Below are positions 4,112 to 33,778 of a stretch of DNA of 64,000 nt, in pieces. A program made the position numbers and the translations under genes. The notes under the pieces were generated by a model. It saw only the letters and a program-made list of their open reading frames with translations. It was not told the origin of the DNA and made no database searches. Source of the DNA: Mantamonas sphyraenae STR306 (taxonomy: Eukaryota; Protista; CRuMs); contig JAPMXV010000073.1 of the NCBI GenBank assembly GCA_026936335.1, positions 162,431 to 226,430 of the forward strand, in the 5' to 3' direction. Positions within the stretch are counted from its first letter, which is position 1, and each line of letters starts with the position of its first letter.

Positions 4112-6296
4112 ATGAGCACACAGACGAAAGTGGACTGGCATTCACTGCTGCAGAACGGTGATGAGGAGCGCATTGGAGCGGCGTTGGCAGAGGCGGGTGA
4201 GGTATGTTTGTGCGGAGGGAAGGGAGGGGAAAGTCGTGGACGTGTCAGACGAAACGCATGGAGAGAGTAGGGTTTGGGACGATGGTTTCCTGAGATACGG
4301 GATGTGATCGCTGACACGAGTGGTGCAGCATTTGAACCTCGGGGAAAGGATCACGGACAATCTGGCAAAGGCACTGGCAAAGAACAGCAGCTTGAAGTCA
4401 CTGAGACTTCGCAGCAACGTCATTGGGGAAGAGGAAGCAGCCGAACTGGCGCAGGCGCTGAGGGAGAACAGCAGTTTGGAGCACCTGGAAATGTACCAGA
4501 ACAGCCTTGGCTACAGAGGGGTAGCAGCATTGGCAGACGCACTGTGTGAGAACAGCACCCTGCGGAGCTTGCACATCGGGAGCAACAGCATCGGTGACGA
4601 AGGTGCAGCAGAACTGGCCAAGGCTGTGGTTGTGAACAGCTGCCTGCAGGAGCTGAGCCTCGGCTTCAACGACATCGGAGTCGAAGGGGCAGCAGCACTG
4701 GCAAGTACTCTGTGTGAGAACAACAGCTTGCAGACACTGGACCTCAGCCACAACACCATCGGTATAGAGGGTGTAACAGCACTGAGCAAGGCACTTTGCA
4801 AGAATAGTAGCTTGCTGACCTTGGAGCTTTACCACAACAACGTCGGGCACGAAGGAGCAACAGTGCTGGGAAAGGCACTGTGTGACAACAACAGCTTGCA
4901 GACACTGGACCTCAGACACAATGACATTGGTGCAGAGGGAGCAACAGCGCTGAGCGAGGCACTTTGCAACAACAGCAGCTTGCTGTCCTTGCAGCTGTAC
5001 TACAACAACGTCGGGCACGAGGGTGCATCAGCACTGGCGACGGTTCTTTCTGTGAACGACACCTTGCGGACACTGGATCTGGACAGCAACGATATCGGGG
5101 ACGAGGGAACATCCGCGCTGGCCAAGGCACTGTGTGACAACAACAGCCTGCAGACACTGATTCTCAATCGCAATAGCATCGGTGCAGAAACTGCAACTAA
5201 ACTGAGCATGGCACTGTGCAACAACAGCAGCTTGCTGACACTGACTCTCGACGGCAACTCCATCGGTGCAGCTGGTGCACTAGCACTGAGCAAGGCACTG
5301 TGCACCAACAGCAGCTTGCAGACATTGCATCTCTACAAATCCAACGTCGGGGACGAGGGAGTAGCAGCGCTGGCACAGGCGCTGAGTGGGAACAGCACCT
5401 TGCGTCGCCTAAACATTGAGGGCAACGTCATCGGGGCCGAAGGGGCTGCAGCACTGGCAAAGGCACTGACGGAAAACAACAGCTTGCAGAGACTGGGCCT
5501 TGGGGACAGCAACATCAGGGATGAAGAAGCATCAGCACTGGCGCAGGGACTGGGTGAAAACAACAGCTTGCAGACACTCATACTCAGCAGGAACAGCATC
5601 GGAGACAAAGGAGCAGCTGCTCTGGCGCAGGCACTGAGCAAGAACAGCACCTTGCAGAGACTGAATCTCAGAAACAATGTTATCAGCGCAGCAGGAGCAG
5701 TGGCACTGGCACAGGCGCTTGTTGAGAACAGCACCTTGCAGGAGCTGGAACTCGCGGCCAACTTCATCTTGAAGAAGGGAATTTCGGCTCTGGCAGTTGC
5801 GATGGAAGACAATCGATCAAGCTGGAAGATTGGCACCGGATCCCTAGTGTATGATCCACTGCGGTCACTGTTGGAGAGGAACAATGAGCGGCATGTGGAG
5901 TTTGTGCAGTGTGGGGATGTGAAGAGGATGGCTGGGCTGAGGGAGTGGGGTGTGCCCGTGGACACGCTTGCTGCACGTGAGGAGACGGCATTGGATAGAG
6001 CGGTGAAACAAGGGAATGATGAGGTGGTGGAGGCATTGCGGGGCTGGGGTGCTACAGTGAGTGAAAAGACCGTGAAGTTGGTGAGGGAGGGAGGATGGAG
6101 GAAGGAGTGGCATTGGATCGGGTGGAGTGGGGTGGTGGATGAGGGGATGGAAGTGGCGTTGGTGATGAATGGGGAGGAGAGGGAAGTGATGTTTGAGTGT
6201 GGGGGGATGGAAGGGTATGAGGCGAGTTGTGATTGGTGGACGGTGCCAGATGAGGTGATGGACAGGGTGTTGGGGTGGATGGGCAAGGGAGGGTGA
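4112..6296 (+). CDS. LRR-ANK-C-terminal F-box-like protein, copy 1 (17 LRRs); exons 4112-4201, 4329-6296
   Basis: 30-codon exon MSTQTKVDWHSLLQNGDEERIGAALAEAGE, then a GTATGT..GCTGAC..CAG phase-0 intron. 28-aa RI/NLRC3-type repeats NxxLxxLxLxxNxIGxEGAxALAxAL, ANK-like TALDRAVKQGNDEVVEALRGWGA, and tail WWTVPDEVMDRVLGWM. Confidence 0.9.
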
Positions 6297-6577
6297 GGAG
6301 AGAGTGATGGGAATGAATGGTGGATTTGGGTTGGGTGGGGTTTGGCATTGGAGGGGATGGGGGTTGGGAAGGGGAAAGGTGGGAGTTGTGCCCTGCTCGG
6401 ATGCACTGGGTGGACCACTGGAACTTGGAAAGAGACAAGGTTGGTGTGCAGAGGGAGGGATGCGACTGTGCATGGGGCTGGGTCATGGAAGGGGCGTTGT
6501 GGAAGGGCAAAAGGAGGAAGCCGAGATGGGTGTGACGTGCTGGAGCTCACACGGGACGCAGGACCAGTTTGTTGAGC

Positions 6578-8714
6578 ATGGGCTCAAAGAACATGGATAG
6601 TTGGAAGGAACTACTGCAGAGTGGTGATGAAGAGCGCATTGCAGTGGCATTGGCAGAGGCGGGTGAGGTATGTTTGTGCGGCGGGAAGGGAGGGGGAAGT
6701 CGTGGACGTGTCACAGACGAGGAGGGGGGTGAGGGGAGACACGAACGCATGGAGAGAGTAGGGTTTGGACGATGGTTGCGTGAGATACGGGATGTGATCG
6801 CTGACACGAGTGTTGCAGCAATTGACCCTGTGGGAGAGGATCAGGGGCAATCTGATGGTGACACTGGCCAAGGCACTGGCAAAGAACAGCAGCTTGAAGT
6901 CACTAAACCTTGGCGGCAGCGGTATCGGGGAGGAGGAAGCAGCCGAACTGGCGCAGGCGCTGAGGGAGAACAGCAGTTTGGAGCACCTGGAAATGTACCA
7001 GAACAGCCTTGGCTACAGGGGGGTAGCAGCATTGGCAGACGCACTGTGTGAGAACAGCACCCTGCGGAGCTTGAACATTGGAGGCAGCAACATCGGTGAC
7101 GAAGGTGCAGCAGAACTGGCCAAGGCTGTGGTTGTGAACAGCTGCCTGCAGGAGCTGAGCCTTTGTTTCAACAACATCGGAGCCGAAGGGGCAGCAGCAC
7201 TGGCAAATACTCTTTGTGAGAACAACAGCTTGCAGAGGCTGAACCTCAGCCACAACACCATCGGTATAGAGGGTGCAACAGCACTGAGCAAGGCACTGTG
7301 CAACAACAGCACCTTGGTGACCTTGCTGCTCTACAGAACCAAGGTTGGGGACGAGGGAGCGACGGCGCTGGCAAGGACTCTTTCTGTCAACGACACCTTG
7401 CGCAAACTGGACCTGGATAGCAACGGCATCGGGGAAGAGGGGGCATCAGCGCTGGCAAAGATTCTCTGTGAAAACAACAGCTTGCAGACACTGAATCTCA
7501 ACCGCAATAGCATCGGTGCAGAAACTGCAACTAAACTGAGCATGGCACTTTGTGAAAACAGCAGCTTGAAGACCTTGCATCTCTACTCCAACAACATCGG
7601 TCCCGAGGGAGCAGCAGCGCTGGCACAGGCGCTGTGTGAGAACAGCATCTTGCAGACACTGAATCTCAACAGCAACGACATCGGTGCAGAGGGTGCACTA
7701 GCACTGAGCAAGGCACTGTGCACCAACAGCAGCTTGCAGACATTGCAGCTTCACCACACCAAAATCGGGGACGAGGGAGCGTCGGCGCTTGCACAGGCCA
7801 TGTACGTGAACAGCACCTTGCGTCGCCTAAACATTGAGGGCAACGTCATCGGGGCCGAAGGGGCTGCAGCACTGGCAAAGGCACTAACGGAAAACAACAG
7901 CTTGCAGAGACTGGACCTTGGTGACAACAACATCAGGGATGAAGAAGCATCAGCACTGGCGCAGGGACTGGGTGATAGCAGCAGCCTGCAGACACTCTTC
8001 CTCAGCAAGAACAACATCGGGGACAAAGGAGCAGCTGCTCTGGCGCAGGCGCTGAGCAAGAACAGCACCTTGCAGAGACTGGATCTGAGAAACAATGTTA
8101 TCGGGACAGCAGGAGCAGTGGCACTGGCACAGGCGCTTGTTGAGAACAGCACCTTGCAGGCACTGGAACTCGGAGCCAACTTCATCTTGAAGAAGGGAAT
8201 TTCGGCTCTGGCAGTTGCGATGGAAGACAATCGATCGTGCTGGAGGATTGACACCGGATCCTTCGTGTATGATCCACTGCAATCGCTGTTGGAGAGGAAC
8301 AAGGAGCGGCATGTGGAGTTTGTGCAGTGTGGGGATGTGGAGAAGATGGCTGCGTTGAGGGAGTGGGGTGTGCCTGTGGACACGCTCGCTGCACGTGAGG
8401 GGACGGCATTGGAACGAGCGGTGAAGCAAGGGAATGATGAGGTGGTGGAGGCATTGCGGGACTGGGGTGCTACAGTGAGTGAAGAGACCGTGAAGTTGGT
8501 GAGGGAGGAAGGGTGGAGGAAGGAGTGGCATTGGATTGGGTGGAGTGGGGTGGTGGATGAGGGGATGGAAGTGGCGTTGGTGATGAATGGGGAGGAGAGG
8601 GAAGTGATGTTTGAGTGTGGAGGGATGGAGGGGTATGAGGCGAGTTGTGAGTGGTGGACGGTGCCGGATGAGGTGATGGAGAGGGTGTTGGGGTGGATGG
8701 GCAAGGGAGGGTGA
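6578..8714 (+). CDS. LRR-ANK-F-box-like protein, copy 2 (16 LRRs); exons 6578-6667, 6819-8714
   Basis: Same architecture; exon 1 MGSKNMDSWKELLQSGDEERIAVALAEAGE; intron 6668-6818. Confidence 0.9.
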
Positions 8715-8998
8715 GGGAGAATGAATGGTGGCATTGGGTGGTGGGGGTTGGCATTGGAGGGGTGGGTGGGAGGGAGGGGGGAGAAAGGAGGGAGTTGTGC
8801 GTCTGCTGCTCGGATGCACTGGATGGCCCATTGGAACTTGGATAGAGACAAGGTTGGTGTGCAAGAAGGGAAGAGCGTGCAGCAGGGAGGTATGGGGCTG
8901 GGTCATGAGAGTGGGCGCTGTGTAAAGTGCAAAAAGGGGGGCCGAGATGGGTGTGACGTGCTGGAGCTCACACGGGACGCAGGACCAGCTGGTTGGCC

Positions 8999-10686
8999 AT
9001 GAGCGCACAGATCAGGAGTGTGTGGAGGGCTCTGTTGTGGTATGGTGACGAGGAGCGCATTGAAGCGGCCTTGGCAGATGCGGGGGAGGTGAGTTTGCGA
9101 TTAGAGGGAAATGAAGTCGGTTGGCCGTGGTGGGGAGTGAGGGAGGAGAGTTGCGTGAAATGTGGGACCACTGGGTTCGCAAGTGACAGCTGACACGAAT
9201 GATGCAGGACTTGAGTCTGCAAATGCTGGATATTGGTTCCGCCGAAGCAAAGTCACTGGCAAGGGCACTCGCTGCGAACAGCAGCTTACAGACGTTATCC
9301 CTCAGAATGAACGACATTGGGGATGAAGGTGCATCGGCGCTGGCCAAGGCTTTGGCAGCTAACCGCACGTTGCTGTCCCTGGCCTTGACCAACAATGCAA
9401 TCGGCGTCGACGGAGCAACAGCACTGGCACAGGCACTGAATGAGAACAACAGCTTGCAGAGGCTGTACCTCGGCGGTAACAACATCGGATCAGAGGGAGC
9501 AGCATCACTCGCCAAGGCAATGGATATGAAGAGCAGCTTGCAGATGTTGGAACTCAGTGACAACAATGTCGAGTCAGAAGGGGCAGCAGCACTGGGTCAG
9601 GCGCTGAGAGAGAACAGCAGCCTAAAGGCACTGGACCTCAGAAGCAACAGCATTGGGGCAGAAGGGGCAGCAGCGTTGGCACATGCGCTTTCTGAGAACC
9701 GCAGCTTGCTGAGACTGGACGTCAGCAACAACAGCATCGAGGCAGAAGGAGCAGTATTACTGGCACAGGCACTAGTTGAGAACCGCAGCTTGCTGAGACT
9801 GGACCTTGGGGCCAATGGCATCGGGGATGTGGGAGCAGAAGCAATGGCCCAGTCAATGTGCGAGAACAGTAGCTTGCAGACACTGCATCTCAGCAAGAAC
9901 AACATCGGAGCAGAAGGGGCGGAAGCACTGGCGCAGGCGCTGAATGGGAACAGCACCTTGCAATCAGTTACCCTTGATGGGAACAATATCGGGGCAGAAG
10001 GAGCAGCTGCACTGGCACAGGCACTCTGTGTGAACAGCAGCTTGCAATTCCTGGACCTTCGCATGAACAGGATCGGGATACCAGGGGCGGTGGCACTGAC
10101 CCAGGCACTGGATGTGAACAGAAGGTTGCAGAGACTTGTCCTGGGCTCGAACGGCTTCTTGAAAGACGGGACGGGAGCAATGGCCAAGGCGATGGAAAAC
10201 AATCGATCGTGCTGGGCGATCCACTTCGGATTCGGTGTCGATGAAGCGCTGCAATCGCTGTTGAAGAGGAACAAGGATCGGCATGTGGAGTTTGTGGAGT
10301 GTGGAGATGTGGAGAGGATGGCTGCGCTGAGGGAGTGGGGTGTGCCTGTAGACACGCTTGCTGCACGTGAGGAGACTGCGTTGGAGAGAGCGGTGAAGCA
10401 AGGGAATGATGAGGTGGTGGAGGCATTGCGGGGCTGGGGTGCTACAGTGAGGGAAGAGACGGTGAAGTTGGTGAGGGAGGAAGGATGGAGGAAGGAGTGG
10501 CATTGGATTGGGTGGAGTGGGGTGGTGGATGAGGGGATGGAAGTGGCGTTGGTGATGAATGGGGAGGAGAGGGAAGTGATGTTTGAGTGTGGAGGGATGG
10601 AAGGGTATGAGGCGAGTTGTGATTGGTGGACGGTGCCGGATGAGGTGATGGACAGGGTGTTGGGGTGGATGGGGAAGGGAGAGTGA
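8999..10686 (+). CDS. LRR-ANK-F-box-like protein, copy 3 (11 LRRs); exons 8999-9088, 9208-10686
   Basis: Exon 1 MSAQIRSVWRALLWYGDEERIEAALADAGE; GTGAGT..GCTGAC..CAG intron. Confidence 0.9.
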
Positions 10687-10892
10687 GGAGAGAGTGATGG
10701 GAATGAATGGTGGATTTGGGTGGTGGGAAGGGTTGGATTGGAGGGTTGGGTGGGTGGAGGGGGGGGGAGAGGAGGGAGTTGTGTGTCTGGTGCTCGGATG
10801 CACTGGGTGGCCCACTGGAACTTGGATAGAGGCAAGGTTGGTCGGTGGTGTCTGTGTGGGAAGGGTGATGGTGGTGGAGAAGAGTGTGGAAG

Positions 10893-11013
10893 GGAGCAGT
10901 GGAGGAGGGGAGCACGTGAGAACGGGAGGGGAGCAGTGGAGGAGGGGAGCACGTGAGAACGGGAGGGGAGCACGTGGGAACGGGAGGGGAGCACGTGGGA
11001 ACGGGAGGGGAGC
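10893..11013 (+). repeat. Minisatellite: four GGAGCACGTG(A/G)GAACGGGAGG units (two preceded by GGAGCAGTGGAGGAGG) upstream of copy 4
   Basis: Directly visible; each unit contains CACGTG. Confidence 0.85.
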
Positions 11014-11043
11014 TGACACAAGGGGATCCAGGTCGATTTGATC

Positions 11044-12994
11044 ATGAGCACAACACATGAGGTGGACTGGGAGACACTGCTGCAGATCGGTGATCAGGAA
11101 CGCATTGGGGAGGCATTGGAAGAAGCGGGGGAGGTAAGTTTGTAGTTTTGCAGGTTGGCTTCTGGGAAAGGCGGGTCTATGGCTGACACAGATGCTGTAG
11201 ACCTTGGAACTACACGGCATGGAGACCAAAGGTGCGTCCGTGGTTCGCGCACTGATGGCAATGAGCCATTTGCGAGCACAGGCGTCTCTGAAGAACGGCA
11301 ACGGCGAGATGGAAGCATCAGCGGGGGGGTCACAAGCACAGGGACAGAGACGGAACGTGATTAGGAACAAAATCAGCGACAGAGGTGCAGCCGTGCTGGC
11401 CGTGGCGTTGAGTGAGAACAGCAGGTTGACGACGCTGAACCTCGAGAGCAACAGCATCGGGCCAGAAGGGGCAGCAGCGCTTGCAACGGCAGTACGAAAG
11501 AACAGGAGCTTGCTGACGCTGATCCTTGCAAGGAACGAAATCGGGGCAGGAGGGGCGGAAGCACTGGCGGGGGCACTGGGGGAGAACGGAACCTTGCGCA
11601 CACTGAACGTCGTTGCCAACAGGATCAACGACGAAGGGGCGGCAGCACTGGCACGTGCACTCAATGGGAACAGCTCCTTGAGAAGGTTGGATCTCGACAG
11701 CAACTGCATCGGGGCAGAAGGGGCAACAGCACTGGCGGAGGCACTAAGAGAGAATAGCAGCTTGAAGAGATTGGATCTGGACAGCAACCACATCGGGGCA
11801 ATTGGGGCAGTCGCCTTGGCAAAGGCACTGGCAGAGAATAGCAGCTTGCAGACACTGTCACTTCACATGATCAACATTGGGGGAGAAGGAGTCGAAGCAA
11901 TTTTCAAGGCACTGCAAAGGAACAACTGCTTGCAGACACTGGACCTCGCCAGCACCTGGATCCAAGGGGAAGGGGCAGCAGCACTGGCAGAGGCACTGAG
12001 TGGGAACAGCAGCTTGAAGACGCTGAAACTCAGTAGCAACAGGTTTGGAGACGAAGGGGCAGCATCACTGGCGCAAGGACTGGCTGAGAACAGCAGCTTG
12101 CAGACACTGGACCTCCGCCAAACCCGCATTGGGCCAGAAGGAGCCGCTGCACTGGCACAGGTGCTGAGTGAGAACGACAGTTTGCAAACAGTCAACCTTG
12201 ACCTCAACAACATCGGAGCAGAAGGGGCGGAAGCACTGGCGCAGGCCCTGAATGTGAACAGCACCTTGCAATCAGTTACCCTTGATGGGAACAACATCGG
12301 GGCAGAAGGAGCAGCTGCACTGGCACAGGCACTCTGTGTGAACAGCACCTTGCAATTCCTGGACCTTCGCATGAACAGGATCGGGACACAAGGGGCGATG
12401 GCACTGGTCCAGGCACTGGATGTGAACAGAAGCTTGCAGAGACTTGTCCTGGGCTCGAACGGCTTCTTGAAAGACGGGACGGGAGCAATGGCCAAGGCGA
12501 TGGAAAACAATCGATCGTGCTGGGCGATCCACGTCGGATTCGGTGTCGATGAAGCGTTGCAATCTCTGTTGAAGAGGAACAAGGAGCGGCATGTGGAGTT
12601 TGTGAAATGTGGGGATGTACAGAGGATGGCTGCGCTGAGGGAGTGGGGTGTGCCTGTGGACACGCTTGCTGCACGTGAGGAGACTGCGTTGGAGAGAGCG
12701 GTGAAGCAAGGGAATGATGAGGTGGTGGAGGCATTGCGGGGCTGGGGTGCTACAGTGAGGGAAGAGACGGTGAAGTTGGTGAGGGAGGCAGGATGGAGGA
12801 GGGAGTGGCATTGGATTGGGTGGAGTGGGGTGGTGGATGAGGGGATGGAAGTGGCGTTGGTGATGAATGGGGAGGAGAGGGAAGTGATGTTTGAGTGTGG
12901 GGGGATGGAAGGGTATGAGGCGAGTTGTGCGTGGTGGACGGTGCCAGATGAGGTGATGGAGAGGGTGTTGGGGTGGATGGGCAAGGGAGGGTGA
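11044..12994 (+). CDS. LRR-ANK-F-box-like protein, copy 4 (13 LRRs plus a unique N-terminal insertion); exons 11044-11133, 11201-12994
   Basis: Exon 1 MSTTHEVDWETLLQIGDQERIGEALEEAGE; GTAAGT..GCTGAC..TAG intron 11134-11200. Confidence 0.9.
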
Positions 12995-13293
12995 GGAGGG
13001 AATGATGGGAATGAATGTTGGCATTGGGTGGATGGGGGTTGGCATTGGAGGGGATGGGGGGTGGGAAGGGGAAAGGAGGGAGTTGTGCCCTGCTCGGATG
13101 CACTGGGTGGACCACTGGAACTTGGGAAGAGAGACAAGGTTGGTGTTGAGTAGGGGGAAGAGTGTGCAGAGGGAGGGATGTGACTGTGGATGGGCTGGGT
13201 CATGGGAGGGGTGTTGTGGAAGGGCAAAACGAGGAAGCTGAGTTGCTTGTGACGTGCTGGGGCTCACACGGACGCAGGGCCAGTTGGTTGACC

Positions 13294-14806
13294 ATGGACA
13301 CAGAGCCATCACTGTATTGGAAGGAATTGCTGCAGAGCGGTGATGAGGAGCGCATTGGAGTGGCATTGGCAGAGGCCGGGGAGGTGAGTTTGCGAGAAGA
13401 GGGCAACGAAGTCGGTTGGCCGTGGTGGGGAGTGAGGAAGGAGAGGCGTGTGAATGTGGGACCGCTGGGTGCGCATGTGACAGCTGACACGGATTGTGTA
13501 GGAGATGTGGCTGCAAATGATGGATTTTGGTCCCGCCGAAGTGAAATCCCTGGCAAAGGCACTGGCTGGGAACAGCAACTTGCAGAGGTTGAACCTCGGT
13601 ATCAATGACATAGGGGACGAAGGTGCCTCGGAACTGGCCAAGGCTTTGGCAGCGAACAGCAGCTTGTTGTCCCTGGCCTTGAGCAGCAATGCAATCGGCG
13701 TCGACGGAGCAACAGCACTGGCACAGGCGCTGAATGAGAACAACAGCCTGCTGAGGCTGTACCTCACAAGAAACAGCATCAAGGCACAAGGGGCAGCAGC
13801 TTTGGCACAGGCACTGGGTAAGAACAGCAGGTTGCAGGTGTTGGAACTCCACAGCAACAGCATCGGGGATGAGGGAGCAGCAGCACTGGGGCAGGCACTG
13901 AGTGAGACCAGATGGTTGCATACACTGGACCTCAGAAACAATAGCATCGGGGCAGCAGGAGCAGCAGCTTTGGCACAAGGACTGGGTGAGAACAGAAGTC
14001 TCCGGCAACTGAATCTTGGCAACAACAACTTCGGGGACGAAGGGGCAGCAGCAATTGGACAGGCACTGAGGGAGAACAGTAGCTTGCAGACACTGAATCT
14101 CGACGACAACAACGTCGGAGCAGAAGGGGCAACAGCACTTGGGCAGGCACTGAGTCAGAACAGCACCTTGCAGACAATGTTCCTCAACACCAACAGCCTC
14201 GGAGAAGAAGGCGCATCCGCTCTGGCTGAGGGACTGAGTGAGAACAGCACCTTGCAGAGACTGTACCTTGACCAGAACAAGATCGGAGAAGAAGGAGTGT
14301 CGGCTCTGGCCAAGGCGATGGACAGCAATCGATCGTGCTGGCAGATGGAGGTCGGAGCCGTTGTCGATGAGGCATTGCAGGCACTGTTGAAGGGGAACAA
14401 GGAACGGCATGTGGAGTTTGTGCAGTGTGGGGATGTGGAGAGGATGGCTGCGCTGAGGGTGTGGGGTGTGCCTGTAGACACGGCACGTTGGGAGACGGCA
14501 TTGGAACGAGCGGTGAAGCAAGGGAATGATGAGGTGGTGGAGGCATTGCGGGACTGGGGTGCTACAGTGAGTGAAGAGACCGTGAAGTTGGTGAGGGAGG
14601 GAGGATGGAGGAAGGAGTGGCATTGGATAGGGTGGAGTGGGGTGGTGGATGAGGGGATGGAGGTGGCGTTGGTGATGAATGGGGAGGAGAGGGAAGTGAT
14701 GTTTGAGTGTGGAGGGATGGATGGGTATGAGGCGAGTTGTAAGTGGTGGACGGTGCCAGATGAGGTGATGGAGAGGGTGTTGGGGTGGATGGGCAAGGGA
14801 GGGTGA
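13294..14806 (+). CDS. LRR-ANK-F-box-like protein, copy 5 (9 LRRs); exons 13294-13383, 13502-14806
   Basis: Exon 1 MDTEPSLYWKELLQSGDEERIGVALAEAGE; intron 13384-13501. Confidence 0.9.
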
Positions 14807-15074
14807 GGGGGAATGAATGTTGGTATTTGGTGGGTTGGTGGGTGGGAGGGGAAAGGTGGGAGTTGGGTGTCTGCTGCTCGTATGCACTGGGTGGCCCACT
14901 GGAACTTGGAAAGAGACAAGGTTGGTGTGCAAGGAGGGAAGAGTGTGCACAGGGAGGGATGCGACTGTGGATGGGACTGGGTCATGGGAGGGGTGTTGTG
15001 GAAGGGCAAAAAGCGGACGCTGAATTGGTTGTGACGTGCGAGCTCACACGGGACGCAGGACCAGTTGATTGACC

Positions 15075-21490: not shown

Positions 21491-21504
21491 GCAGTTTTGG
21501 GTGG

Positions 21505-23456: not shown

Positions 23457-25394
23457 TCAGATTTCCATTTCATCGTTCTCCTCCCCTTCTTGCTCGAGCA
23501 CAATCACCCCATTGTCGTCTGTTGTGACGCCACGATCGTCATGCAAGGGAGGCAACACACCCTCTGTGCTGCCTGCCTCAGAGCGTCGTGGTGACCTGCT
23601 GGAGCCGAAAAACTCGCGTTGTCGCCTGCGCTTCTCCTTGTTCTCTTGTTCTTCCTGTGCGTGCACACGTTCGACGACGTCCTGGAAAAACTGCATGCAG
23701 AACATACAAATGTTGACTGGTTCGTACATGCGCGAGGGAATGCGAAAGAGGGCCTTCTCGTCGACGCCCCACTCGCGCCGTTTCTTCTTGGCCACGGTGA
23801 CCCAAGGCAACTGCATCTTCATCCAATCGTTGCGAAAGGATTGGTCGCACACCTCGCAGCGTGTGGTGGTGCCTCGCTTGCTGATGACAGGCTTGGGAGG
23901 CGATGTGGTTTGTGCAAACTTGTCGGGACTTGCCTTGTGCACCACATCCACAGAGAGGTCGTTGCGATGTTGCATGTCCCTCACCAGCTCCTCCAATTCC
24001 GACTTCATCAGCATTTCCTGCCGTGCAAATTCCCTCTGCATCGCCGCACGCTCTTCCTTCTCTGCGTTCAGTTGCGCCACGCGTGCTTCGTACTCTGCAA
24101 TGCTGGCTTCCAAACGTGCCTTTTCCGCCTCCTCCTTCGCCTGCAGGTTGCGCACCGCCTGCGCATGTCGTCCCTCTCGCTTTCTGCTCAATTCTGCCAG
24201 GCGTGCGCGCTGCCGTTCCATCTCTGCCGCCGCCTTTTCTCGTCGGTCGTCCTCCTGCACCCGCTTCGCTTCCAATTCGGCCGCCTGTTCCTCGCGCAGC
24301 TTCTGCAATCGATCACGCAGCTCCTGCGACCGCTCCTCCGCCTGTCTGCGGCTCTGTTCGATCTTGCGCTGCTTTTTTGCCGCCAGCCGGTCGATGCGCT
24401 TTCGTGTGTTGGCTGCCTCCTTGGCTGCCTTGCGCTCCTGTGCCCGTTGTCGCTTCTGAAACTCCCGTTGCGACTCTTTGAACTTTTGGTGGGTCTTTTG
24501 GTTGCGCTTGTGAAACTTGTTGGCCACCCGCTCTCGTTGCGCCTCCGCTGCCGCCGCACGTGCTTCGTACTTGCGTTTGATTTCCTGTTCACGTTCCCTC
24601 TGTGCGGCCGCTTTGGCCCTCCGTCGCTCCTGTGCCTCTTCCTGCCGCAACGACTCTCGGTACGCCGCCTCGTCCGCCTCCAACGCCAGGATGCGCTTCC
24701 GTTGCCGTTCTCGCGCCTCCTCCTCACGCACACGTTTACGGTGTTCCTCGTTGTCCATCAACCCAAGCTTCTTTTCCTTCGACACACTGTGGTGCGGCGC
24801 CACGTGGTCATTGGGTGTCGCGTGCGCGGTGTGTGCGGTGCATCAGTGCAAACACGGTGTCAGTTGTAACGGCTCTCCCTCTTTGCACCCCTCCGTCTCG
24901 CCACACACTCACCGTGCACGCTTTTCCTCTTGAATCAGCTTGATTTTCACTTTGGTGCGCACTGCAGTCGACGAAATCGACGTCGTGGACATCCCAGAGC
25001 CTGGTGAGAGGACTTCCAAGGCACGTGATCCCACGCCCCCTGTGTTTTGTCCTCGGATGGTCACCTTGCTCCCTTCTCCTCGTTCCAATGCCTCCTCCAA
25101 ATCCTTCTCTGCTTCTCGTTTGAGTCTCTCACGAAGTGCCATGGCGTTGGCTCGCTGTCTGTCGCGGCGGCGCTCGTTGGCCCGGATGGTCGTTTCCAAC
25201 TTGGCCCCATTGGACAGCTGCTTTACCTGGTTGGCTTTGGCCCGTTTGATGCGCTCTACATTGCGTTTGTGCCGCCGTTGCACCTCTGCTTGCATCCGTT
25301 CCTGTCGCGACGGCGTCAATCCGGGCGAGTGCAGGATTGACACCGGGCTCTGCGTCTGTCCAGGGGTCTTTGATGATCGCACGTGACGCTGCAT
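23457..25394 (-). CDS. Long coiled-coil protein with a C-terminal CxxC...CxxC (zinc-finger-like) region; exons 25394-24913, 24786-23457
   Basis: Two R/E/K/Q-rich ORFs are joined by a phase-2 GTGAGT..CAG intron (24912-24787); motif CEVCDQSF...MYEPVNICMFCMQFF. Confidence 0.75.
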
Positions 25395-25488
25395 GTTCAC
25401 GTGTCAACACCAAAACAAGAATAAGTTGCGGGAGGAGAGAAGGTGTGGGGTGGCAGCAAGTGGTGTGGTGTTGGAAGGGATCGCGCGG

Positions 25489-27410
25489 GTGAGGATGATT
25501 GATCAACGCCTCCATTCCTGGTCCCACTTTGCAACATCTCCTCTCCTCTCCTCTCCTTTCCTCTCTGTCTCTCGCTGTGTTGCCAACACCAGCACTGGGG
25601 CGGATCCTTGCTTTGGGCGAGAGTCCGGTAGCGAGCGAGCTTCTGCCGTCATATGCAGCATACCATCTCCCACTCCCATTCCCATCCCCTCACTCCCTTC
25701 TTACTCGGGCTTGCGCACCAGAATGGCGTACATGGGCGTAAAGATGCCCGTCTCACCACCTGCCACCAGAGCGTCGGCTGCTGCGTTCAGCATGTCACTC
25801 GTCTCTGTCGTGCCCTTGGGTGCCAGCCACAGTGCCTCCAGGATGCTCACGGCCACACGCGTCGTCATGCGACCCGCCCACGTGCGACGGAAGCCCTCCA
25901 GAGTGAACGACGGCGACAGCGACTCGTACCAGGGCACGGGGCTGTCCAGAGCCACGTCACGCTCAAACACAATCTCAAACCCGGCCTTTTCCAGGCACTC
26001 GATCGTGTACTCCATCGTGTCCATGTCCGGCAGACCATCTCCCACCTCGATCCCCTTCTTGATCTCCTGGTGCTCACGGTTCTGCGGGTCGTATCGCGGC
26101 GTCAAGCACCACTCGTAGCTGAAGAACGTGCCTCCGGGCTTCAGCACACGGAAGATCTCTGCGTACAGCTCGTTCTTGTCCGGTGCATGGCACGTTGCCT
26201 CCACTGCAAACGCACGGTCAAACTCTCCGTCCTCCACAGGCATGTCCATGAAGCTGCACTTCAGGAAGCTGCAGCAGTGGTCCAGTCCTGCGTCGATGTT
26301 GTACTGCTTGCCCTTGGCAATCTGTGTCCCCATTCGCCGTCAGCGTCCTTTCCAGGTCCACCCGAAACGGGAAAGTTCACGAAAAGCCAGTTCGCCCACG
26401 CGTTTCCCACCCTCACCCTCTCCACTCACCTGGTGCGCGTTGTTGTTGGCACCCACAATGTGCACAAGGTCCTCCTCCTTCGTCACACCGTGGTTCAGAA
26501 AGCTGTGTGTGTGTGTCCCGCCCGCGTCAGCCTCCCAACCACCCTTTCCGGCGTGTATGTCCCTCGACTTTTCCTCGCCTCTCGCCCCCGCCCATCGCCC
26601 ATCCATATCCATCCCCCATCCACTCCATCCTCCTCTCCACACCCTTCCCACTCCCACACTTACCGAGACACGTTGCGCATGGGTCCGCCAATGCCGCACC
26701 CAAGGTCCACAATCTTGTCGCCCGGCTGCGCCTGAAGCATGTGCCCAAGCCAGTACTCGTGGCGCTTGATCGACTCCAGGAACGTCTCTCCCACAGCACG
26801 GGATGCAAAGTGGAATCCCTCGCCCCATCTGCATGTTTGTCCATGTGTCCCATCATCCCCACCATCCTCTGTGTCAGCCCGTGGGCAACACTCCACCGGT
26901 TGCGTTTTTTTTCGGCCGTTCGTTCCTGGACCCAACCTGGCCAACCACACACAAAAAAACCACGCCGTGCGCCCTTTCCCACACCGCTGGCTTGTGTCAC
27001 AACTTACCCGTGGATGTAAAACTCGGTAACCAGATCGTAGTAGGCGTTGACCATGTCCAGGGACGTGGTCTTGCGCTCCTCGCTCTTGTCGCCCTTGGAA
27101 TCGTCGTGGACGGCCAGGTAGCTCTTGATGGTCGAGTTGACGTCGACGCCCGACGCAGGGACGGCAGACAAGCCGGCGTGGCTCTTGAGTCCCGAAGTCT
27201 CCTTCTGTGCCTTGGTTTCAAACGTGTTGGACATGGGTGGGTGTCGGATGGGTGTGTTTGGTGTTGGTTGAGGTGGTTGGGAAGGGGGCGGGATCGGGGG
27301 GGGAGGTTATGGAAGACATGGATGGGGAAGAGAAAGGGAATGATTGATTGTGTGTGTGAGGTGTATGTGAGGTGGGTCATCATCATCATTCCATTGCAGT
27401 CTCTTCATTT
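25489..27410 (-). repeat. Right arm of the inverted duplication
   Basis: Reverse complement of 21505-23406. Confidence 0.95.
25701..27234 (-). CDS. SMT1: Sterol 24-C-methyltransferase, copy B (same 4-exon structure, apparently identical protein)
   Basis: The translated exons in the ORF track (27004-27234, 25701-26333) are identical to copy A. Confidence 0.95.
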
Positions 27411-27423
27411 CTCCATGAACTGC

Positions 27424-29476
27424 TTACTCTGCCTTGCCCATCCACGCCAACACCCTCTCCATCACCTCATCCGGCACCGTCCACCACGCACAACTCGCCT
27501 CATACCCTTCCATCCCCCCACACTCAAACATCACTTCCCTCTCCTCCCCATTCATCACCAACGCCACTTCCATCCCCTCATCCACCACCCCACTCCACCC
27601 AATCCAATGCCACTCTCTCCTCCATCCTGCCTCCCTCACCAACTCCACCGTCTCTTCCCTCACTGTAGCACCCCAGCCTTGTAATGCCTCCACCACCTCA
27701 TCATTCCCTTCCTTCACCGCTCGTTCCAACGCCGTGTCTGCCCACGCAGCAAGCGTGTCTACAGGCACACCCCACTCCCTCAGCCCAGCCATCCTCTCCA
27801 CATCACCACACTCCACAAACTCCACATGCCGCTCATTGTTCCTCTTCAACAGTGACCGCAGTGGATCATACACTAGGGATCCAGTGTCAATCTTCCAGCA
27901 CGATCGATTGTTTTCCATCGCAACTGCCAATGCTGATGCTCCCTTTGTTGTGATGAAATTGGCCCCGAGTTCCAGTTCCTGCAAGGTGCTGTTCTCAGCA
28001 AGCGCCTGTGCCAGTGCCACTGCTCCTGCTGCTCCGATGTTGTTGTGTCTGAGGAGCATTGTGTGCAAGGTGCTGTTCTTGCACAGCGCCTGCGCCAGAG
28101 CAGCTGCTCCGTTGTCCCCGATGCTGTTCCTGCAGAGTATGAGTGTCTGCAAGCTGTTGTTTTCACCCAGTCCCTGAGCCAGTGCTGATGCTTCTTTCTT
28201 CCCGATGTTGCTGTCCCTTAGGTCCAGTCTCTGCAAGCTGTTGTTTTCCGTCAGTGCTTTTGCCAGTGCTGCGGCTCCTTCGACTCCGATGACATTGCCC
28301 TCAATGTTTAGGCGACGCAAGGTGCTGTTCCCACTCAGCGCCTGTGCCAGCGCTGTTGCTCCCTCGTCCCCGACGTTGGTGTTGTAGAGTTGCAATGTCT
28401 GCAAGCTGCTGTTGGTGCACAGTGCCTTGCTCAGTGCTGTTGCACCTTCTGCACCGATGGAGTTGCTGTTGAGATTGAGTGTCAGCAAGCTGCTGTTGTT
28501 GCACAGTGCCATGCTCAGTGCACTTGCACCTTCTGCTTCGATGCCGTTCTTGCTGAGGTCCAGTGTCTGCAAGCTGTTGTTGTCACACAGTGCCTGGGCC
28601 AGCGCTGATGTTCCCTCTTCCCCGATGTCGTTGCTGTTCAGGTCCAGTGTCCGCAAGGTGTCGTTCACAGACAGAACCATTGCCAGTGCTGTTGCTCCCT
28701 CGTCCCCGATCGTGGTGTGGTGAAGCTGCAAAGTCACCAAGGTGCTGTTGTTGCAAAGTGCCTTGCCCAGTGCTGTTGCACCTGCTGCACCGATGTAATT
28801 GCCGTCGAGATTCAGTGTCAGCAAGCTGCTATTGTTACAAAGTGCCTTGCTCAGTGCTTTTGCACCCTCTGATCCGATGTAATTGCCGTCGAGGTTCAGT
28901 ATCTGCAAGCTGTTGTTGTCACGCAGAGTCTTTGCCAGTGCTGCTGCCCCTTCGGCTCCGATGTCGTTGAAGCAAAGGCTCAAGCTCCGCAGCGTGCTGT
29001 TCTCACACAGTGCGTCTGCCAATGCTGCTACCCCTCTGTAGCCAAGGCTGTTCTGGTACATTTCCAGGTGCTCCAAACTGCTGTTCTCCCTCAGCGCCTG
29101 CGCCAGTTCTGCTGCTTCCTCTTCCCCAATGACATTGCTGCGAAGGTTCAGTGACTTCAAGCTGCTGTTCTTTGCCAGTGCCTTTGCCAGTGTCACCATC
29201 AGTTTGTCAACGATCTTGTTCCCCAGGTTCAAATGCTGCACCACTCGTGTCAGCGATCACCTCCCGTATCTCACGCAACCATCGTCCATAATCTACTCCC
29301 TCCTTGCGTTCGTGTCTCCCCTCTCAACCCTCCCCGTCTGTGACACGTCCACGACTTCCCCCTCCCTTCGCGCAGCGCAAACTTGCCTCCCCCGCCTCTT
29401 CCAACGCAACGCCAATGCGCTCTTCATCGCCGCTCTGCAGCAATTCCTTCCAGTCTACATCCATCTGTGTGCCCAT
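27424..29476 (-). CDS. LRR-ANK-F-box-like protein, copy 9 (15 LRRs); exons 29476-29387, 29235-27424; GC-AG intron
   Basis: Exon 1 MGTQMDVDWKELLQSGDEERIGVALEEAGE; donor GAG|GCAAGT; ends WWTVPDEVMERVLAWMGKAE. Confidence 0.88.
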
Positions 29477-29745
29477 GGTCAATCAACTGGTCCTGCGTCC
29501 CGTGTGAGCTCGCACGTCACATCCAATTCAGCATCCGCTTTTTGCCCTTCCAAAACACCCCTCCCATGACCCAGCCCATCCACAGTCACATCCCTCTCTC
29601 TGCACTCCATTCCCTCCTTGCACACCAACCTTGTCTCTCTTTCCAAGTTCCAGTGGTCCCCTCAGTGCATCCGAGCACCAGACACCCAACACTCTCCTTT
29701 CCCTTCCCACCCACCAACCCACCAAATACCAACATTCATTCCCCC

Positions 29746-31295
29746 TCACCCTCCCTTGCCCATCCACCCCAACACCCTCTCCATCACCTCATCCGGCACC
29801 GTCCACCACGCACAACTCGCCTCATACCCTTCCATCCCCCCACACTCAAACATCACTTCCCTCTCCTCCCCATTCATCACCAACGCCACTTCCATCCCCT
29901 CATCCACCACCCCACTCCACCCAATCCAATGCCACTCCCTCCTCCATCCTCCCTCCCTCACCAACTCCACCGTCTCTTCCCTCACTGTAGCACCCCAGCC
30001 TTGTAATGCCTCAACCACCTCATCATTCCCTTGCTTCACCGCTCTCTTCAACGCCGTCTCCTCACGTGCAGCAAGCGTGTCCACAGGCACACCCCACCCC
30101 CTCAACGCACCCATCCTCTCCACATCCCCACATTCCACAAACTCCACATGCCGATCCTTGTTCCTCTTCAACAGTGACTGCAATGCCTCATTGAAAACGA
30201 CTTGGAACTCAATCTGCCAGCACGATCGATTGTTTTCCATCGCCTTTGCCAGTGCCGATGCACCTTCTTCCCCGATGCTGTTCTGGTTGAGGAACAGTCT
30301 TTGCAAGCTGCTGTTCTCACTCAGTCCCTCAGCCAGAGAGGATGCGCCTGCTTTCCCGATGCTGTTCTGGTCGAGGAGCATTGTCTGCAAGGTGCTGTTC
30401 TCCCTCAGTGCCTGCGCCAGAGCTGCTGCACCTTCGTCCCCGATCCGGTTCGTGTAGATTTGCAACATCAACAAACTGCTTTTGCCATTCAGTGCGTGTG
30501 CAAGTGCTGCTCCTCCTTCTGCCCCGATGTCGTTGACGTTGAGACGCAGTTCCCTCAAGTTGCAGTTGCAAAGTGCCTGTGCCAGTGCTGCAGCTCCCTT
30601 GTCACCGATTGAGTTGCTTTCGAGGTTCAGTGTCCGCAAGATGTGGTTCTCCCTCAGGACATGCGCCAGTTTCGCTGTTCCTTCGTCCCCGATGTTGTTG
30701 CCGTCGAGGGAGAGTGTTTGCAAGCCGTTGTTCTCTCCCAGTGCCATTGCAAGCGCCGTTGCTCCTTCTTCCCCAATGCCGTTCATGCGTAGGTTCAGTG
30801 TCTGCAAGCAGCGGTTCTTACTCAATGCCTGCGCCAGTTCCGCTGCCCCTTCTGCTCCAATGCTGTTGCCGAAGAGATTCAGCGTCTTCAAGCTGCTGTT
30901 CTCGCCCAGTGCATGTGCCAGTGCCGCTGCTCCTTCGTCACCAATGCGGTTTCCGATGAGATTCACTGTCTGCAAGCTGGTATTCACACACAATGCCTGT
31001 GCCAGTGCTGCTGCCCCTTCTGCTCCGAAGGTTTTGTTGTAGTTGATGTTCAACGTGCGCACACTGCTGTTCACCGCAAGAGCCTGGGCCAGTGCAGCTA
31101 CCTCCTCTGCCCCAACGTCCCGCCAACTCAGTTTCAATGTCTGCCCAGAGTGTCAGTCACCACCGCCCATGCCCTCGCACGGGAGACGTTGGCCCCCAAA
31201 CATACCTCCCCCGCCTCTTCCAACGCCACTCCAATGCGCTCTTCATCACCACTCTGCAACAGTGAAACCCAGTCCACTTTCGTCTGTGTGTTCAT
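29746..31295 (-). CDS. LRR-ANK-F-box-like protein, copy 10 (10 LRRs); exons 31295-31206, 31140-29746
   Basis: Exon 1 MNTQTKVDWVSLLQSGDEERIGVALEEAGE; GTATGT..ACTGAC..CAG intron. Confidence 0.9.
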
Positions 31296-31554
31296 GGTCA
31301 ACCAACTGGTCCTGCGTCCAGTGTGAGCTCGAGCAATTCAACATCCTCTCTATGCCCTTCCACAACACCCCTCCCATGACCCAGCCCATCCACAGTCACA
31401 TCCCTCCCTCAGCACACTCTTCCCTTCTTGCAGACCAACCTTGTCTCTTTCCAAGTTCCAGTGGGCCACCCAGTGCATACGAGCAGCAGACACCCAACTC
31501 CCACCTTTCCCCTCCCACCCACCAACCCACCCAATGCCACCATTCATTCCCTCC

Positions 31555-33778
31555 TCACCCTCCCTTACCCATCCACCCCAACACCCTCTCCATCACCTCA
31601 TCCGGCACCGTCCACCACTCACAACTCGCCTCATACCCATCCATCCCCCCACACTCAAACATCACTTCCCTCTCCTCCCCATTCATCACCAACGCCACTT
31701 CCATCCCTTCATCCACCACCCCACTCCACCCAATCCAATGCCACTCCTTCCTCCATCCTCCCTCCCTCACCAACTCCACCGTCTCTTCCCACACTGTAGC
31801 ACCCCAGCCCCGCAATGCGTCCACCACCTCATCATTCCCTTGCTTCACCGCTGTTTCCAACGCCGTGCCCACAAGTGTAGCAAGCGTGTCCACAGGCACA
31901 CCCCACTCCCTCAGTGCAGCCATCCTCTCCACATCCCCACATTCCACAAACTCCACATGCTGCTCCTTGTTCCTGATCAACAGTGCTTTCAGAGTGGAGT
32001 CGACGTATCCAAAATCAATCTGCCAGCATGATCGATTGTTTTCCATCGCCTTGATCAGAGCGGATGCACCTGCCTCCTCGATGTTGTTGTCTGCGAGGTA
32101 CAGTCTCTGCAAGGTGGTGTTCTCAGCAAGCGCCTGTGCCAGTGCCACTGCTCCTGCTGCGCTGATAACATTGTTTCTGATATTCAGTCTCTGCAAGGTG
32201 CTGTTCTTACTCAGTCCCTCAGCCAGAGCTGATGCACCTTCTTCCCCGACGCTGTTGTTGTCGAGGAGCATTGTGTGCAAGGCGCTGTTCTCACTCAGCG
32301 CCTGCGCCAGTACTGTTGCCCCATGTACGCCAATGTTATTGTTGTTGAGATTCAGTTGCTGCAAGCTGTTGTTCTTACTCAACGCCTGTGCCATTGCCGC
32401 TGTCCCTTCCGCCCCGAGGTTGTTCATGCTGAGGCCTAGTGTCTGCAAGCTGCTGTTCTGACTCAGTCCCTGAGCCAGAGCTGGTGCTCCTTCTGCCCCG
32501 ATGCTGTTCTGATTGAGGTACAGTCTCTGCACGCTGTTGTTCTCACACAGTCCCCTAGCCAGACCTGAGGCTCCTTCTGCCCCAATGCTGTTTCTGTCGA
32601 GGTAGATGGTCTTCACGCTGCTGTTCTCACTCAGTGTCTGCCCAAGCGCTGCTGCCCCTGTGTCCCCGATGCTGTTTAAGCTGAGATGCATGGTTTGCAA
32701 GCTACTGTTCGAACTCAGTGCCTGCCCAAGTGCTGTTGCCCCTTCGTCTCCGATGCCGTTCTTGCTGAGAAACAGTTGCTTCAAGCTGTTGTTCTCACTC
32801 AACGCCTGTGCCAGCGTGGATACTCCATCAGCATTGATGTAGTTGTTGTAGAGGTCCAGGGTCTGCAAGCTGCTGTTCTCACTCAGTGCCTGCCCCAGTG
32901 CTGCTCCTCCTTTGTCACCAATCTGGTTTGCGCTGAGACGCAGTTCCATCAAGTTGGAGTTGCCACAAAGTGCCTGGGCCAGTGCTGCTGTTCCTTCGTC
33001 ACCGATTCTGTTGCTTTGAAGGCCCAGTGTCTGCAAAGTGCTGTTCAATCGAAGTGCCGCGGCCAGTTTTGCTGCTGCTTCTGCACCGATGCCATTATTG
33101 TTCACAATCAGCTGCTGCAAGCTACGGTTGCCACACAGTGACTTTGCGAGTGCTGCAGCTCCCTTGTCACCGATTCTGTTGCCGTGCAAGTCAAGCGTCC
33201 GCAAGGTGCTGTTCACACACAACGCCTGTGCCAGAAGAGCTGCTCCTTCTGCCCCAACTGTGTTGTCGGTTAAAATCAGTGTCTGCAAGCTGCTGTTGGC
33301 ACTCAATCCCTCGGCCAACGCTGCAGCTCCTTCGTACCCGATGCGGTTGTCCTGGAGCAAAAGCGCCAGCAAGCCGCTGTTCTCACCCAGTGCCAGTGCC
33401 AGTGCCGCTGCTCCTTCGTCCCGAATGCGGTTCCCGTAGAGATTCACTGTCTGCAAGCTGTTGTTCACACACAATGCCTGTGCCAGGGCTACTGCCCCCT
33501 CTACTCCGAAGGCTTTGTTGCAGTTGAGTTTCAGCGTGCGCACACTGCTGTTCTCAGCCACTGCTGTGGCCAGTGCAACTGCCTCCTCTGCTCTGATGCC
33601 CAGCAAACTCAGTTTCAATGTCTGCAACACGGGTGTCAGTCACCACCGCCCATACCCACGCACGGGCGACGTTCCCCTCTCAACATACCTCCCCCGCCTC
33701 TTCCAACGCCACACCAACGCGCTCCACCTCACCGCTCTGCAGCAATTCCTTCCAGTGTACATCCATCTGTGTGCCCAT
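31555..33778 (-). CDS. LRR-ANK-F-box-like protein, copy 11 (18 LRRs); exons 33778-33689, 33621-31555
   Basis: Exon 1 MGTQMDVHWKELLQSGEVERVGVALEEAGE; intron 33688-33622. Confidence 0.9.

Follow-up and report, generated by a model that had tools for sequence, protein, structure and literature searches.

The window, a 64,000-nucleotide stretch of DNA from Mantamonas sphyraenae, contains an array of genes that we interpret, with moderate confidence, as a repertoire of cytosolic proteins made by ordinary ectopic recombination, in which a variable binding domain is joined to a constant docking module and which is plausibly directed at non-self proteins. The layout is that of immune-like recognition families, but an immune role is only putative. 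The initial annotation had recognized a design of variable leucine-rich repeats (LRRs) and a constant tail, and our analysis bears this out: the number and residues of the LRRs vary, while a tail of 162-164 aa is shared.

In total, 13 related copies were found in the window. Eleven of these are clustered at 4112-33778, eight on the forward and three on the reverse strand, and two (G12 and G13) are dispersed (Table 1). As initially proposed, the reading frames of all 11 clustered genes are intact: each fits a two-exon model with an exon 2 free of stops. Exon 1 of each clustered gene has 90 nt, ends in phase 0 and encodes 30 aa, and the intron has a CTGAC branch point 16-18 nt upstream of an in-frame acceptor; G7 and G9 use GC donors. 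All LRRs of a gene are located in exon 2, without interruption. Although the copies are constantly rearranged, open frames were kept in 12 of the 13, none of which has a premature stop. The 5' end of G4 (about 64 aa) has decayed, with its frame still open, and its upstream element has been replaced by a short tandem repeat (10888-11013). The earlier statement that both dispersed copies share exon 1 applies to G12 only. The tail of G12 has a DNA identity of about 77%, and the tails of G12 and G13 are far more divergent than those in the cluster. The piece of G13 downstream of the frameshift encodes the terminal helix and a basic end resembling a nuclear localization signal. Searches and folding were run exon by exon, with exon 1 and exon 2 separately and G13 as two pieces.

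Table 1. Positions of the genes, tail segments and surrounding features in the window.
Feature	Position	Strand	Description
Spacer	3811-4111	+	conserved, about 300 nt; belongs to the duplicated unit and precedes each of the 11 clustered genes
G1	4112-6296	+	exon 1 4112-4201, exon 2 4329-6296; intron class A; 17 LRRs and tail
G1 tail segment 1	5802-5879	+	variable final strand of the LRR solenoid, with its C-cap
G1 tail segment 2	5883-6065	+	two ankyrin repeats
G1 tail segment 3	6066-6296	+	orphan helical end of about 75 aa; F-box-helix-1-like motif at 6234-6281; no database match
G2	6578-8714	+	exon 1 6578-6667, exon 2 from 6819; class A; 16 LRRs
G3	8999-10686	+	exon 2 from 9208; class B; 11 LRRs; resembles G5 in the 5' part and G4 in the last 3-4 repeats
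G4	11044-12994	+	exon 2 from 11201; decayed in-frame 5' stretch, then 13 LRRs
G5	13294-14806	+	exon 2 from 13502; class B; 9 LRRs
G6	15075-16963	+	exon 2 from 15233; class C; 14 LRRs
G7	17249-19049	+	GC-AG intron; exon 2 from 17490; 12 LRRs; chimeric, the 5' half being of class A and the 3' repeats resembling class C
G8	19347-21490	+	exon 2 from 19505; class C; 17 LRRs
Inverted duplication	20623-23399 / 28291-25500		joins the two arms of the cluster
G9	27424-29476	-	GC-AG intron; exon 2 29235-27424; class A; 15 LRRs; two repeats fused in register form repeat 3
G10	29746-31295	-	exon 2 31140-29746; class C; 10 LRRs
G11	31555-33778	-	exon 2 33621-31555; class C; 18 LRRs; a class A gene is the source of repeat 17 (96% to G1 repeat 16)
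G13	about 55960-57347	+	divergent; about 8 LRRs; no exon-1 homologue, start uncertain; frameshift near 57155
G12	58344-59981	+	dispersed, intact, 3.9 kb from telomere; 29-aa exon 1; exon 2 from 58578; 10 LRRs, internally similar (82-89%)
Telomere, (TTAGGG)n	63845-64000	+	cluster 30-60 kb away

Tandem duplication of a spacer-plus-gene unit (about 2 kb), together with a single inverted duplication, gave rise to the gene family; the inverted duplication includes two copies of a sterol-methyltransferase gene (97-100% identical). The window does end in a telomere array, but the cluster lies at some distance behind housekeeping genes, and the source chromosomes are probably about 320 kb long. Hence, the label 'subtelomeric' given to the array is weak. 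CpG is depleted in the gene array. No Rfam RNAs were found in the 64-kb window, and the window's own proteins are absent from the protein collection searched.

Our recount of the LRRs gave exactly the numbers stated earlier for the 11 clustered genes. The 162 units analysed are nearly all 28 aa long (a period of 84 nt) and are of the ribonuclease inhibitor (RI) type, with 28-29-aa repeats of the form LxxLxLxxNxL followed by a helix. They matched Pfam LRR_6 with E values down to 1e-73. An AF2 model of the repeats predicted an alpha/beta horseshoe (pLDDT >90) with strands at unit positions 3-5; Foldseek matched it to ribonuclease inhibitor at E 5e-20, and the best fold matches were ribonuclease inhibitors and doublet-microtubule LRR proteins. 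The x positions of LxLxxN vary widely, as had been noticed: entropy was 3.1-3.75 bits at unit positions 5, 7, 8 and 10, compared with 0.3-1.0 bits at core positions, and the residue combination at these four positions was distinct in 135 of the 162 units. In the predicted fold, these variable residues map to the concave strand or next to it, which agrees with their assignment to the binding face. The framework of the repeats, in contrast, is not homogeneous, contrary to the initial annotation: median identity between units is 65%, and the convex positions 13, 21, 24 and 25 have entropies of 2.5-2.75 bits. Single-repeat blocks are conserved at 90-100% between paralogues.

The genes are mosaics. 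Gene painting revealed that blocks of repeats have been exchanged between genes in the 84-nt register, triplet runs tests gave p<0.001 in three gene trios, 49% of the informative site pairs of the tail were incompatible, and chimeric repeat units were found (e.g. G9 repeat 3 and G11 repeat 17). Some sub-repeat patches are identical to other units, for instance over 13 nt spanning 7 differences, although the clustering of differences was not significant (p 0.065). Changes involve all base types, and many of the variable codons end in C while many others end in G or A. In-register unequal crossing-over and gene conversion among the 84-nt repeats alter the number of repeats and mix blocks between genes. 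The tail has been homogenized by the same process: its fourfold-site divergence was 0.113 within and 0.114 between intron classes, whereas that of the end repeats across intron classes was saturated at 0.57. The constancy of the tail is therefore due partly to DNA homogenization and not to selection alone. Repeat shuffling and variation in repeat number between paralogues, both present here, characterize diversifying repertoires.

The tail (dN/dS 0.29) and the LRR core (0.16-0.22) are under purifying selection. By class, dN/dS was 0.5 at convex and about 0.9-1.3 at concave positions, and concave positions (1.2) evolved faster than exposed convex positions (0.5; p about 2e-7). Concave residues have been freed from constraint. 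The concave class as a whole did not significantly exceed 1: its dN/dS was 0.9-1.26 with repeats paired by their flanking repeats (p 0.10-0.83) and 0.87-1.07 on a tree of all units, and the class therefore comes close to the dN/dS <=1 that the initial annotation had named as refuting diversifying selection at the xxLxLxx sites. Of that proposal, the faster change of the concave face stands. Only positions 5 and 8 exceeded 1, with a dN/dS of about 1.7 [1.2-2.5], an interval that is conditional on branch lengths and concerns two positions picked among several in a type of test that recombination inflates. A site mixture on concave sites gave p 0.04-0.05. A higher dN/dS of 1.8 with a very small p, from repeats paired by high framework identity, was rejected because choosing pairs for a similar framework lowers the denominator; in that fit the synonymous-rate parameter had also not moved from its starting value. 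Change at positions 5 and 8 was probably favoured, and the evidence for selection as the driver of LRR variation is modest.

The claim of a near-invariant C-terminal module applies to the clustered genes, where the tails share 91-96% of their DNA, and not to the dispersed copies or to the first 26 residues, which vary (59-96% DNA identity) and include the last LRR-like strand. In the tail, an LRR cap is followed by two ankyrin repeats and then by about 75 residues without a detectable relative, the last helix of which is F-box-like. Residues 28-88 match ankyrin proteins and DARPins and have the 33-aa helix-turn-helix form of such repeats, but the two repeats are degenerate and score under the Pfam cut-off. 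The protein-database search, which covered proteins of 0.55-1.75 times the query length and included the Mantamonas plastica proteome, yielded no homologues of the tail. Likewise, no related loci were found in metagenome, viral and prokaryotic contigs, no matches in NCBIfam and PHROGs, and only generic ankyrin proteins in a search of 50% clusters. AlphaFold of the tail alone reached a pLDDT of 42, too low to use, and fold searches with this model returned only non-significant ankyrin matches. One terminal helix was predicted, at pLDDT <50. The Pfam, PDB and profile tests of this last helix as an F-box were all negative: it had no match to Pfam F-box or PRANC models or in the PDB, and hhalign left the motif unaligned to the real F-box of GALA1. 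Matches to Pfam PRiA4_ORF3 and RHH_5 were below the cut-off and were taken as chance. A bacterial origin of the genes from Ralstonia GALA proteins was not supported, as that match was limited to the LRRs with <40% identity.

No NTPase, kinase, TIR, GTPase or other known effector domain was found. NACHT/NB-ARC had no Pfam match in three full exon 2 sequences and there is no room for it in any gene model; the ROC-COR GTPase tandem is absent, the 164-aa tail being made up of ankyrin repeats and orphan helices. Neither a signal peptide nor a convincing membrane helix was predicted, which supports the earlier view that the proteins are intracellular. The hydropathy of exon 1 was <1.0 and the tail is not hydrophobic; hence, the signal peptide, stalk and GPI anchor of variable lymphocyte receptors (VLRs) were not detected.

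Nearly neutral repeat turnover is a possible, though somewhat doubtful, explanation of these patterns. On this view, an LRR gene that is dispensable or was amplified for dosage sits in a tandem array prone to recombination, where selection keeps only fold and frame, unequal exchange alters repeat number, and concave residues drift at the neutral rate because they bind nothing specific. A concave dN/dS of about 1 in three analyses fits this explanation, as do the part of conversion in tail constancy, the decay of G13 and of the G4 5' end, and CpG depletion as in silenced repeats. Relaxed selection on young repeats is, moreover, general (PMC5120217), and gain or loss of repeats is automatically in frame because the unit is 84 nt. 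However, it is opposed by exposed convex positions being held at about 0.5 with concave positions at >=1.2, by a dN/dS >1 at positions 5 and 8, by purifying selection on tail and core and by the lack of premature stops in 12 genes. It is quite unlikely that the genes are paralogues for the cell's own targets, such as RI-like inhibitors or scaffolds, or cytoskeletal or axonemal RI-type LRR proteins, that diversified once and then remained stable. The best fold matches and the conserved single-repeat blocks would suit such proteins, but the mosaicism is recent, repeat numbers have changed, and housekeeping scaffolds are normally conserved whereas the searches for this tail, including that of the Mantamonas plastica proteome, returned no homologue.

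Programmed or somatic diversification, by VLR-like cassette assembly or by mutagenesis as in diversity-generating retroelements (DGRs), seems very improbable. The exact sub-repeat matches and the C-ending variable codons are what it might leave behind, yet codons ending in G or A are also frequent, the clustering of differences fell short of significance, and every repeat lies within a complete gene; the window contained no cassette pseudogenes or fragments, no template repeat and no signal sequences. A DGR-like process was rejected because changes are not confined to adenine, there is no template repeat, and the neighbouring ORFs scanned include no reverse transcriptase. Least credible of all is an assembly artefact with collapsed or chimeric repeats: repetitive sequence and an inverted segment that is nearly identical might suggest it, but copies differ by 4-9% even in the tail, introns are distinct, splice signals are clean and frames are open.

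The same evolutionary regime has been described for fungal NLR repeats, Caenorhabditis F-box genes and Ectocarpus ROCO LRRs (PMC4986451, PMC8665587, PMC3341825). As in the repeat domains of fungal NLRs (Podospora NWD/HNWD, ANK and TPR NLRs; PMC4986451), repeats are shuffled within and between members, their number varies, and variable sites are on the concave face. In contrast to these NLRs, the array genes have no NACHT/NB-ARC or death effector, their repeats are LRRs, and these repeats are much less alike (median DNA identity 65%). The Ectocarpus LRR-ROCO candidates (PMC3341825, PMC11378527) are likewise intracellular LRR genes that occur in clusters; their repeat number varies, their C-terminal module is constant and their concave residues evolve fast, but they carry the ROC-COR GTPase, which the array genes lack, and the repeats here are of the 28-aa RI type. 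Shuffling of one repeat per exon, as in LRR-ROCO genes, is ruled out because all LRRs are in one exon. With the Tetrahymena LRR genes built of 90-bp exons (PMC6564038), the array shares a protist-specific LRR expansion reshaped by ectopic recombination, differing repeat numbers and the location of young genes close to chromosome ends; it differs in having no introns between repeats, no recognized adjacent retrotransposon, and a constant ankyrin-containing tail.

The combination of a variable binding domain with a constant dock also recalls poxvirus and Orientia ANK/F-box (PRANC) proteins and Caenorhabditis F-box proteins (PMC9414399, PMC4353913, PMC8665587). Like PRANC-type proteins, the tail consists of ankyrin repeats, a linker and a C-terminal helix of the LP-x-E type; unlike them, it has one helix before the stop in 12 of the 13 copies where PRANC keeps two, it matches no F-box/PRANC model, its variable part is an LRR domain and the gene is host-encoded. 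The likeness to ribonuclease inhibitor and to the LRR domains of NOD2/NLRP, a 28-residue alpha/beta horseshoe, is one of fold only (26-37% identity), and ribonuclease inhibitor is a conserved single-copy protein without the tail. In lamprey VLRs, the concave LRR face carries specificity and modules are built from shared blocks. The array places its putative specificity on the same face and shares blocks between genes, whereas the secreted or surface location, 24-aa LRRs and somatic cassette assembly of VLRs were not seen.

On the preferred reading of a cytosolic repertoire, the horseshoe of 9-18 RI-type repeats would form the variable binding surface of lineage-specific adaptors, and the two ankyrin repeats and helical tail would dock every member on one shared partner. 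The repertoire would bind ligands that keep changing and are most plausibly non-self proteins of viruses, prey or symbionts. In the weakest step, the tail might recruit a cullin ubiquitin ligase via its F-box-like last helix, which we regard as unlikely overall; the family would then act like the substrate adaptors of the nematode F-box or poxvirus ANK/F-box type. The full scheme, a germline-shuffled intracellular repertoire of a CRuMs flagellate whose LRRs catch foreign proteins and whose new tail, with ankyrin repeats and a minimal F-box-like part, passes them on to a cullin ligase, is equally speculative.

The CRuMs lineage lies near the base of Amorphea, and no comparable family in CRuMs is described in the searchable literature. 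Fungi, brown algae, plants and ciliates already provide examples of the design with shuffled repeats, a constant module and a fast concave face; the novelty lies in the domain architecture, the orphan tail and the lineage rather than in the principle. For the question of how free-living unicellular eukaryotes recognize intracellular invaders, the array offers a compact test case: a dozen predicted cytosolic binders share one tail, and the mechanism of their shuffling has been mapped. If the proposed cullin recruitment were true, the family would mirror poxvirus ANK/F-box proteins on the host side and would represent ubiquitin-based innate immunity in a deep-branching unicellular eukaryote.

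In each of the 11 clustered LRR genes (G1–G11), the first exon comprises 90 nt in phase 0, the intron branch point lies 16–18 nt upstream of an in-frame acceptor, and the second exon is free of internal stops (11/11). Reading frames were verified by phase arithmetic. The initial annotation of 11 intact genes within 4112–33778 therefore holds, and its LRR counts per gene agree exactly with ours. It also listed two dispersed copies sharing the first exon. This applies to G12, an intact relative near the telomere, but not to G13, which lacks exon 1 and has a frameshift near 57155 that could be a sequencing error. The piece after this frameshift (57156–57347, +) carries at its end two basic clusters that look like a bipartite nuclear localisation signal.

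A spacer of ~300 nt is part of the duplicated unit. Eight genes on the + strand face three on the − strand across an inverted duplication (see table), and the G+C skew changes sign between ~24 and 35 kb, consistent with an inverted arm. The sterol 24-C-methyltransferase pair appears to reflect very recent duplication or ongoing conversion. Upstream of G1, a remnant (3811–3840, +) corresponds to the final codons, stop and 3′ flank of the family tail, which suggests the loss or replacement of another copy at this site.

Features in and around the LRR gene cluster
Feature	Position	Strand	Remarks
Inverted duplication	20623–23399 / 28291–25500		Between the two arms of the cluster; includes sterol methyltransferase gene copy
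Sterol 24-C-methyltransferase genes	21585–23399; 25500–27330	+; −	97–100% identity, inverted orientation
Coiled-coil gene	23457–24803	−	In 2.1-kb spacer between the sterol 24-C-methyltransferase copies
Soluble-adenylate-cyclase-like gene	34831–39987	+	Two cyclase domains and an AAA/STAND-type ATPase domain
mRNA triphosphatase, fungal/protozoan type (beta-chain, CYTH)	48569–49936	−	Pfam E 1e-13
Cadmium (zeta-class) carbonic anhydrase domain	54959–55895	−	Pfam CDCA E 5e-29; divergently oriented, adjoins G13
Telomere-adjacent ORF, ~1260 aa	60001–63792	−	~320-aa module repeated twice; no Pfam match over cut-off
Telomere, TTAGGG	Right end of window

The uniform repeat framework described initially was not recovered: median identity between the 84-nt units was only 65%. 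Most units have a partner of 90–100% identity in another gene, arranged in collinear blocks, and unit comparison indicates that the repeats are not independent variations on one uniform framework. The introns sort into three classes that cannot be aligned with one another, A (G1, G2, G7, G9), B (G3, G5) and C (G6, G8, G10, G11 and, loosely, G4), and nearest relatives differ from one gene segment to another. G7 is a class A/C chimera, repeat 17 of G11 derives from a class A gene, the similarity of G3 to G4 is confined to their last repeats, and repeat 3 of G9 consists of two repeats fused within the strand. A single history was rejected in all three gene trios (runs tests, p < 0.001), and half of the informative site pairs in the tail were incompatible. 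The variation was made by ordinary ectopic recombination. G7 (17339, +) and G9 (29386, −) share a 96% identical GC-AG intron despite lying on opposite arms.

Fourfold-site divergence of the tail was 0.11 within and between intron classes alike, versus 0.57 (only 44 sites) in first and last repeats across classes. Hence, exchange homogenises the tail, which is also under purifying selection (dN/dS 0.29). CpG was depleted in the LRR family (4100–21500, 27400–33800), with an observed/expected ratio at codon positions 3-1 of 0.47–0.64 versus 0.9–1.0 in four housekeeping genes, and CpG transitions had about a twofold higher frequency in the differences between paralogues. Repeat-directed methylation may lie behind this pattern, although the measure is unpolarised and hence weak.

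When orthologous repeats were identified by the repeats flanking them, concave positions 3, 5, 7 and 8 gave a dN/dS of 0.92–1.26, no different from 1 (p 0.10–0.83); the all-unit tree gave 0.87–1.07. Core positions had dN/dS of ~0.2 and exposed convex positions 0.5–0.7, the latter lower than the concave positions (p ~2e-7). Positions 5 and 8 each reached 1.7 (conditional interval 1.2–2.5), and the site-mixture test of the concave sites gave a borderline result (p 0.04–0.05), in tests that recombination biases upward. A value of 1.8 from one pairing of repeats was rejected as an ascertainment artefact. For the xxLxLxx sites, where diversifying selection was proposed, dN/dS is thus above 1 at positions 5 and 8 but not significantly so for the class as a whole. 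These results partly show that the binding face changes more rapidly than other surfaces, with a rate equal to the neutral one or slightly higher, and they fit the coexistence of constrained and positively selected sites.

Searches and folds were run on exon 1 or exon 2 separately. AlphaFold confidently predicted a horseshoe of the RI type whose strands occupy unit positions 3–5, and a structure search with this model matched ribonuclease inhibitor, NOD2/NLRP and axonemal LRR proteins. No signal peptide, no convincing membrane helix, and no NTPase, GTPase or kinase domain was found. The tail divides into three: a variable final strand with a cap (residues 1–26), two degenerate ankyrin repeats (residues 28–88), and ~75 final residues that matched nothing in any database tried (protein, Pfam, PDB, NCBIfam, PHROGs, metagenome/viral/prokaryotic contigs). 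It ends in a helix, W-x-T-[VL]-P-D-E-V-M-x-R-V, kept even in G12 and the downstream piece of G13. By eye, this helix resembles helix 1 of the F-box; Pfam, PDB and profile comparison with the real GALA1 F-box all failed to find one, and the likeness is a lead, not a finding. Poxvirus PRANC proteins have an ankyrin–linker–C-terminal F-box layout (PMC4353913, PMC9414399), an order that the family tail would share if its last helix were an F-box, but they retain two helices, whereas a single one is predicted in the tail.

The window (G+C 58.6%, short spliceosomal introns, TTAGGG telomere) is eukaryotic, not human, and a sterol methyltransferase exon beside the cluster matched Mantamonas plastica best (64% identity; next hit 58%). 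For M. sphyraenae, the published genome shows 59.2% G+C and TTAGGG telomeres; it comprises ~66 chromosomes, with contigs averaging 321 kb (PMC10492846). Judged by this one gene and the genome features, the window probably comes from Mantamonas (CRuMs). The genome paper mentions no LRR families, and the searchable literature contained no paper pairing Mantamonas with leucine-rich repeats. The cluster was initially called subtelomeric, but 30–60 kb separate it from the telomere, a stretch that contains adenylate cyclase, exportin-7-like, mRNA triphosphatase, PIG-B-like and CLU genes; the label suits only G12 and G13, the truly telomere-adjacent members. If chromosomes are ~320 kb long, as is probable, about one third of all sequence falls within 60 kb of a chromosome end, and the position of the cluster says little. 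From 35000 to 64000, third-codon G versus C preference tracks DNA strand (G-rich toward the telomere), not gene orientation. The flagellate hosting the CDCA gene is probably heterotrophic.

The diversification steps are demonstrated. The most likely reading, at about even odds, is that the family forms a cytosolic repertoire: the LRR arm would confer specificity, the constant tail would dock on a partner common to all members, and the likely ligands, we infer, would be non-self proteins. Our single best guess for the partner, a doubtful one overall, is a cullin ligase, suggested by the parallel with nematode F-box families (PMC8665587) and viral ANK/F-box proteins. Less probable than such a repertoire, but a serious competitor, is a tandem array that turns over almost neutrally; the concave rates are also compatible with release from constraint alone. 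It is rather unlikely that the paralogues are specialised on self targets. Programmed diversification is very improbable, as there was no sign of cassettes, signal sequences or a retroelement, and an artefact is the least credible explanation.

In mode of evolution, the family resembles the repeat domains of fungal NLRs (PMC4986451), Ectocarpus LRR-ROCO genes (PMC3341825) and young Tetrahymena LRR genes (PMC6564038). The family belongs to none of these systems, because the NTPase, GTPase and one-repeat-per-exon features that define them were looked for and are absent. The kind of system is already known; new here are the architecture and the orphan tail, in a poorly known lineage.
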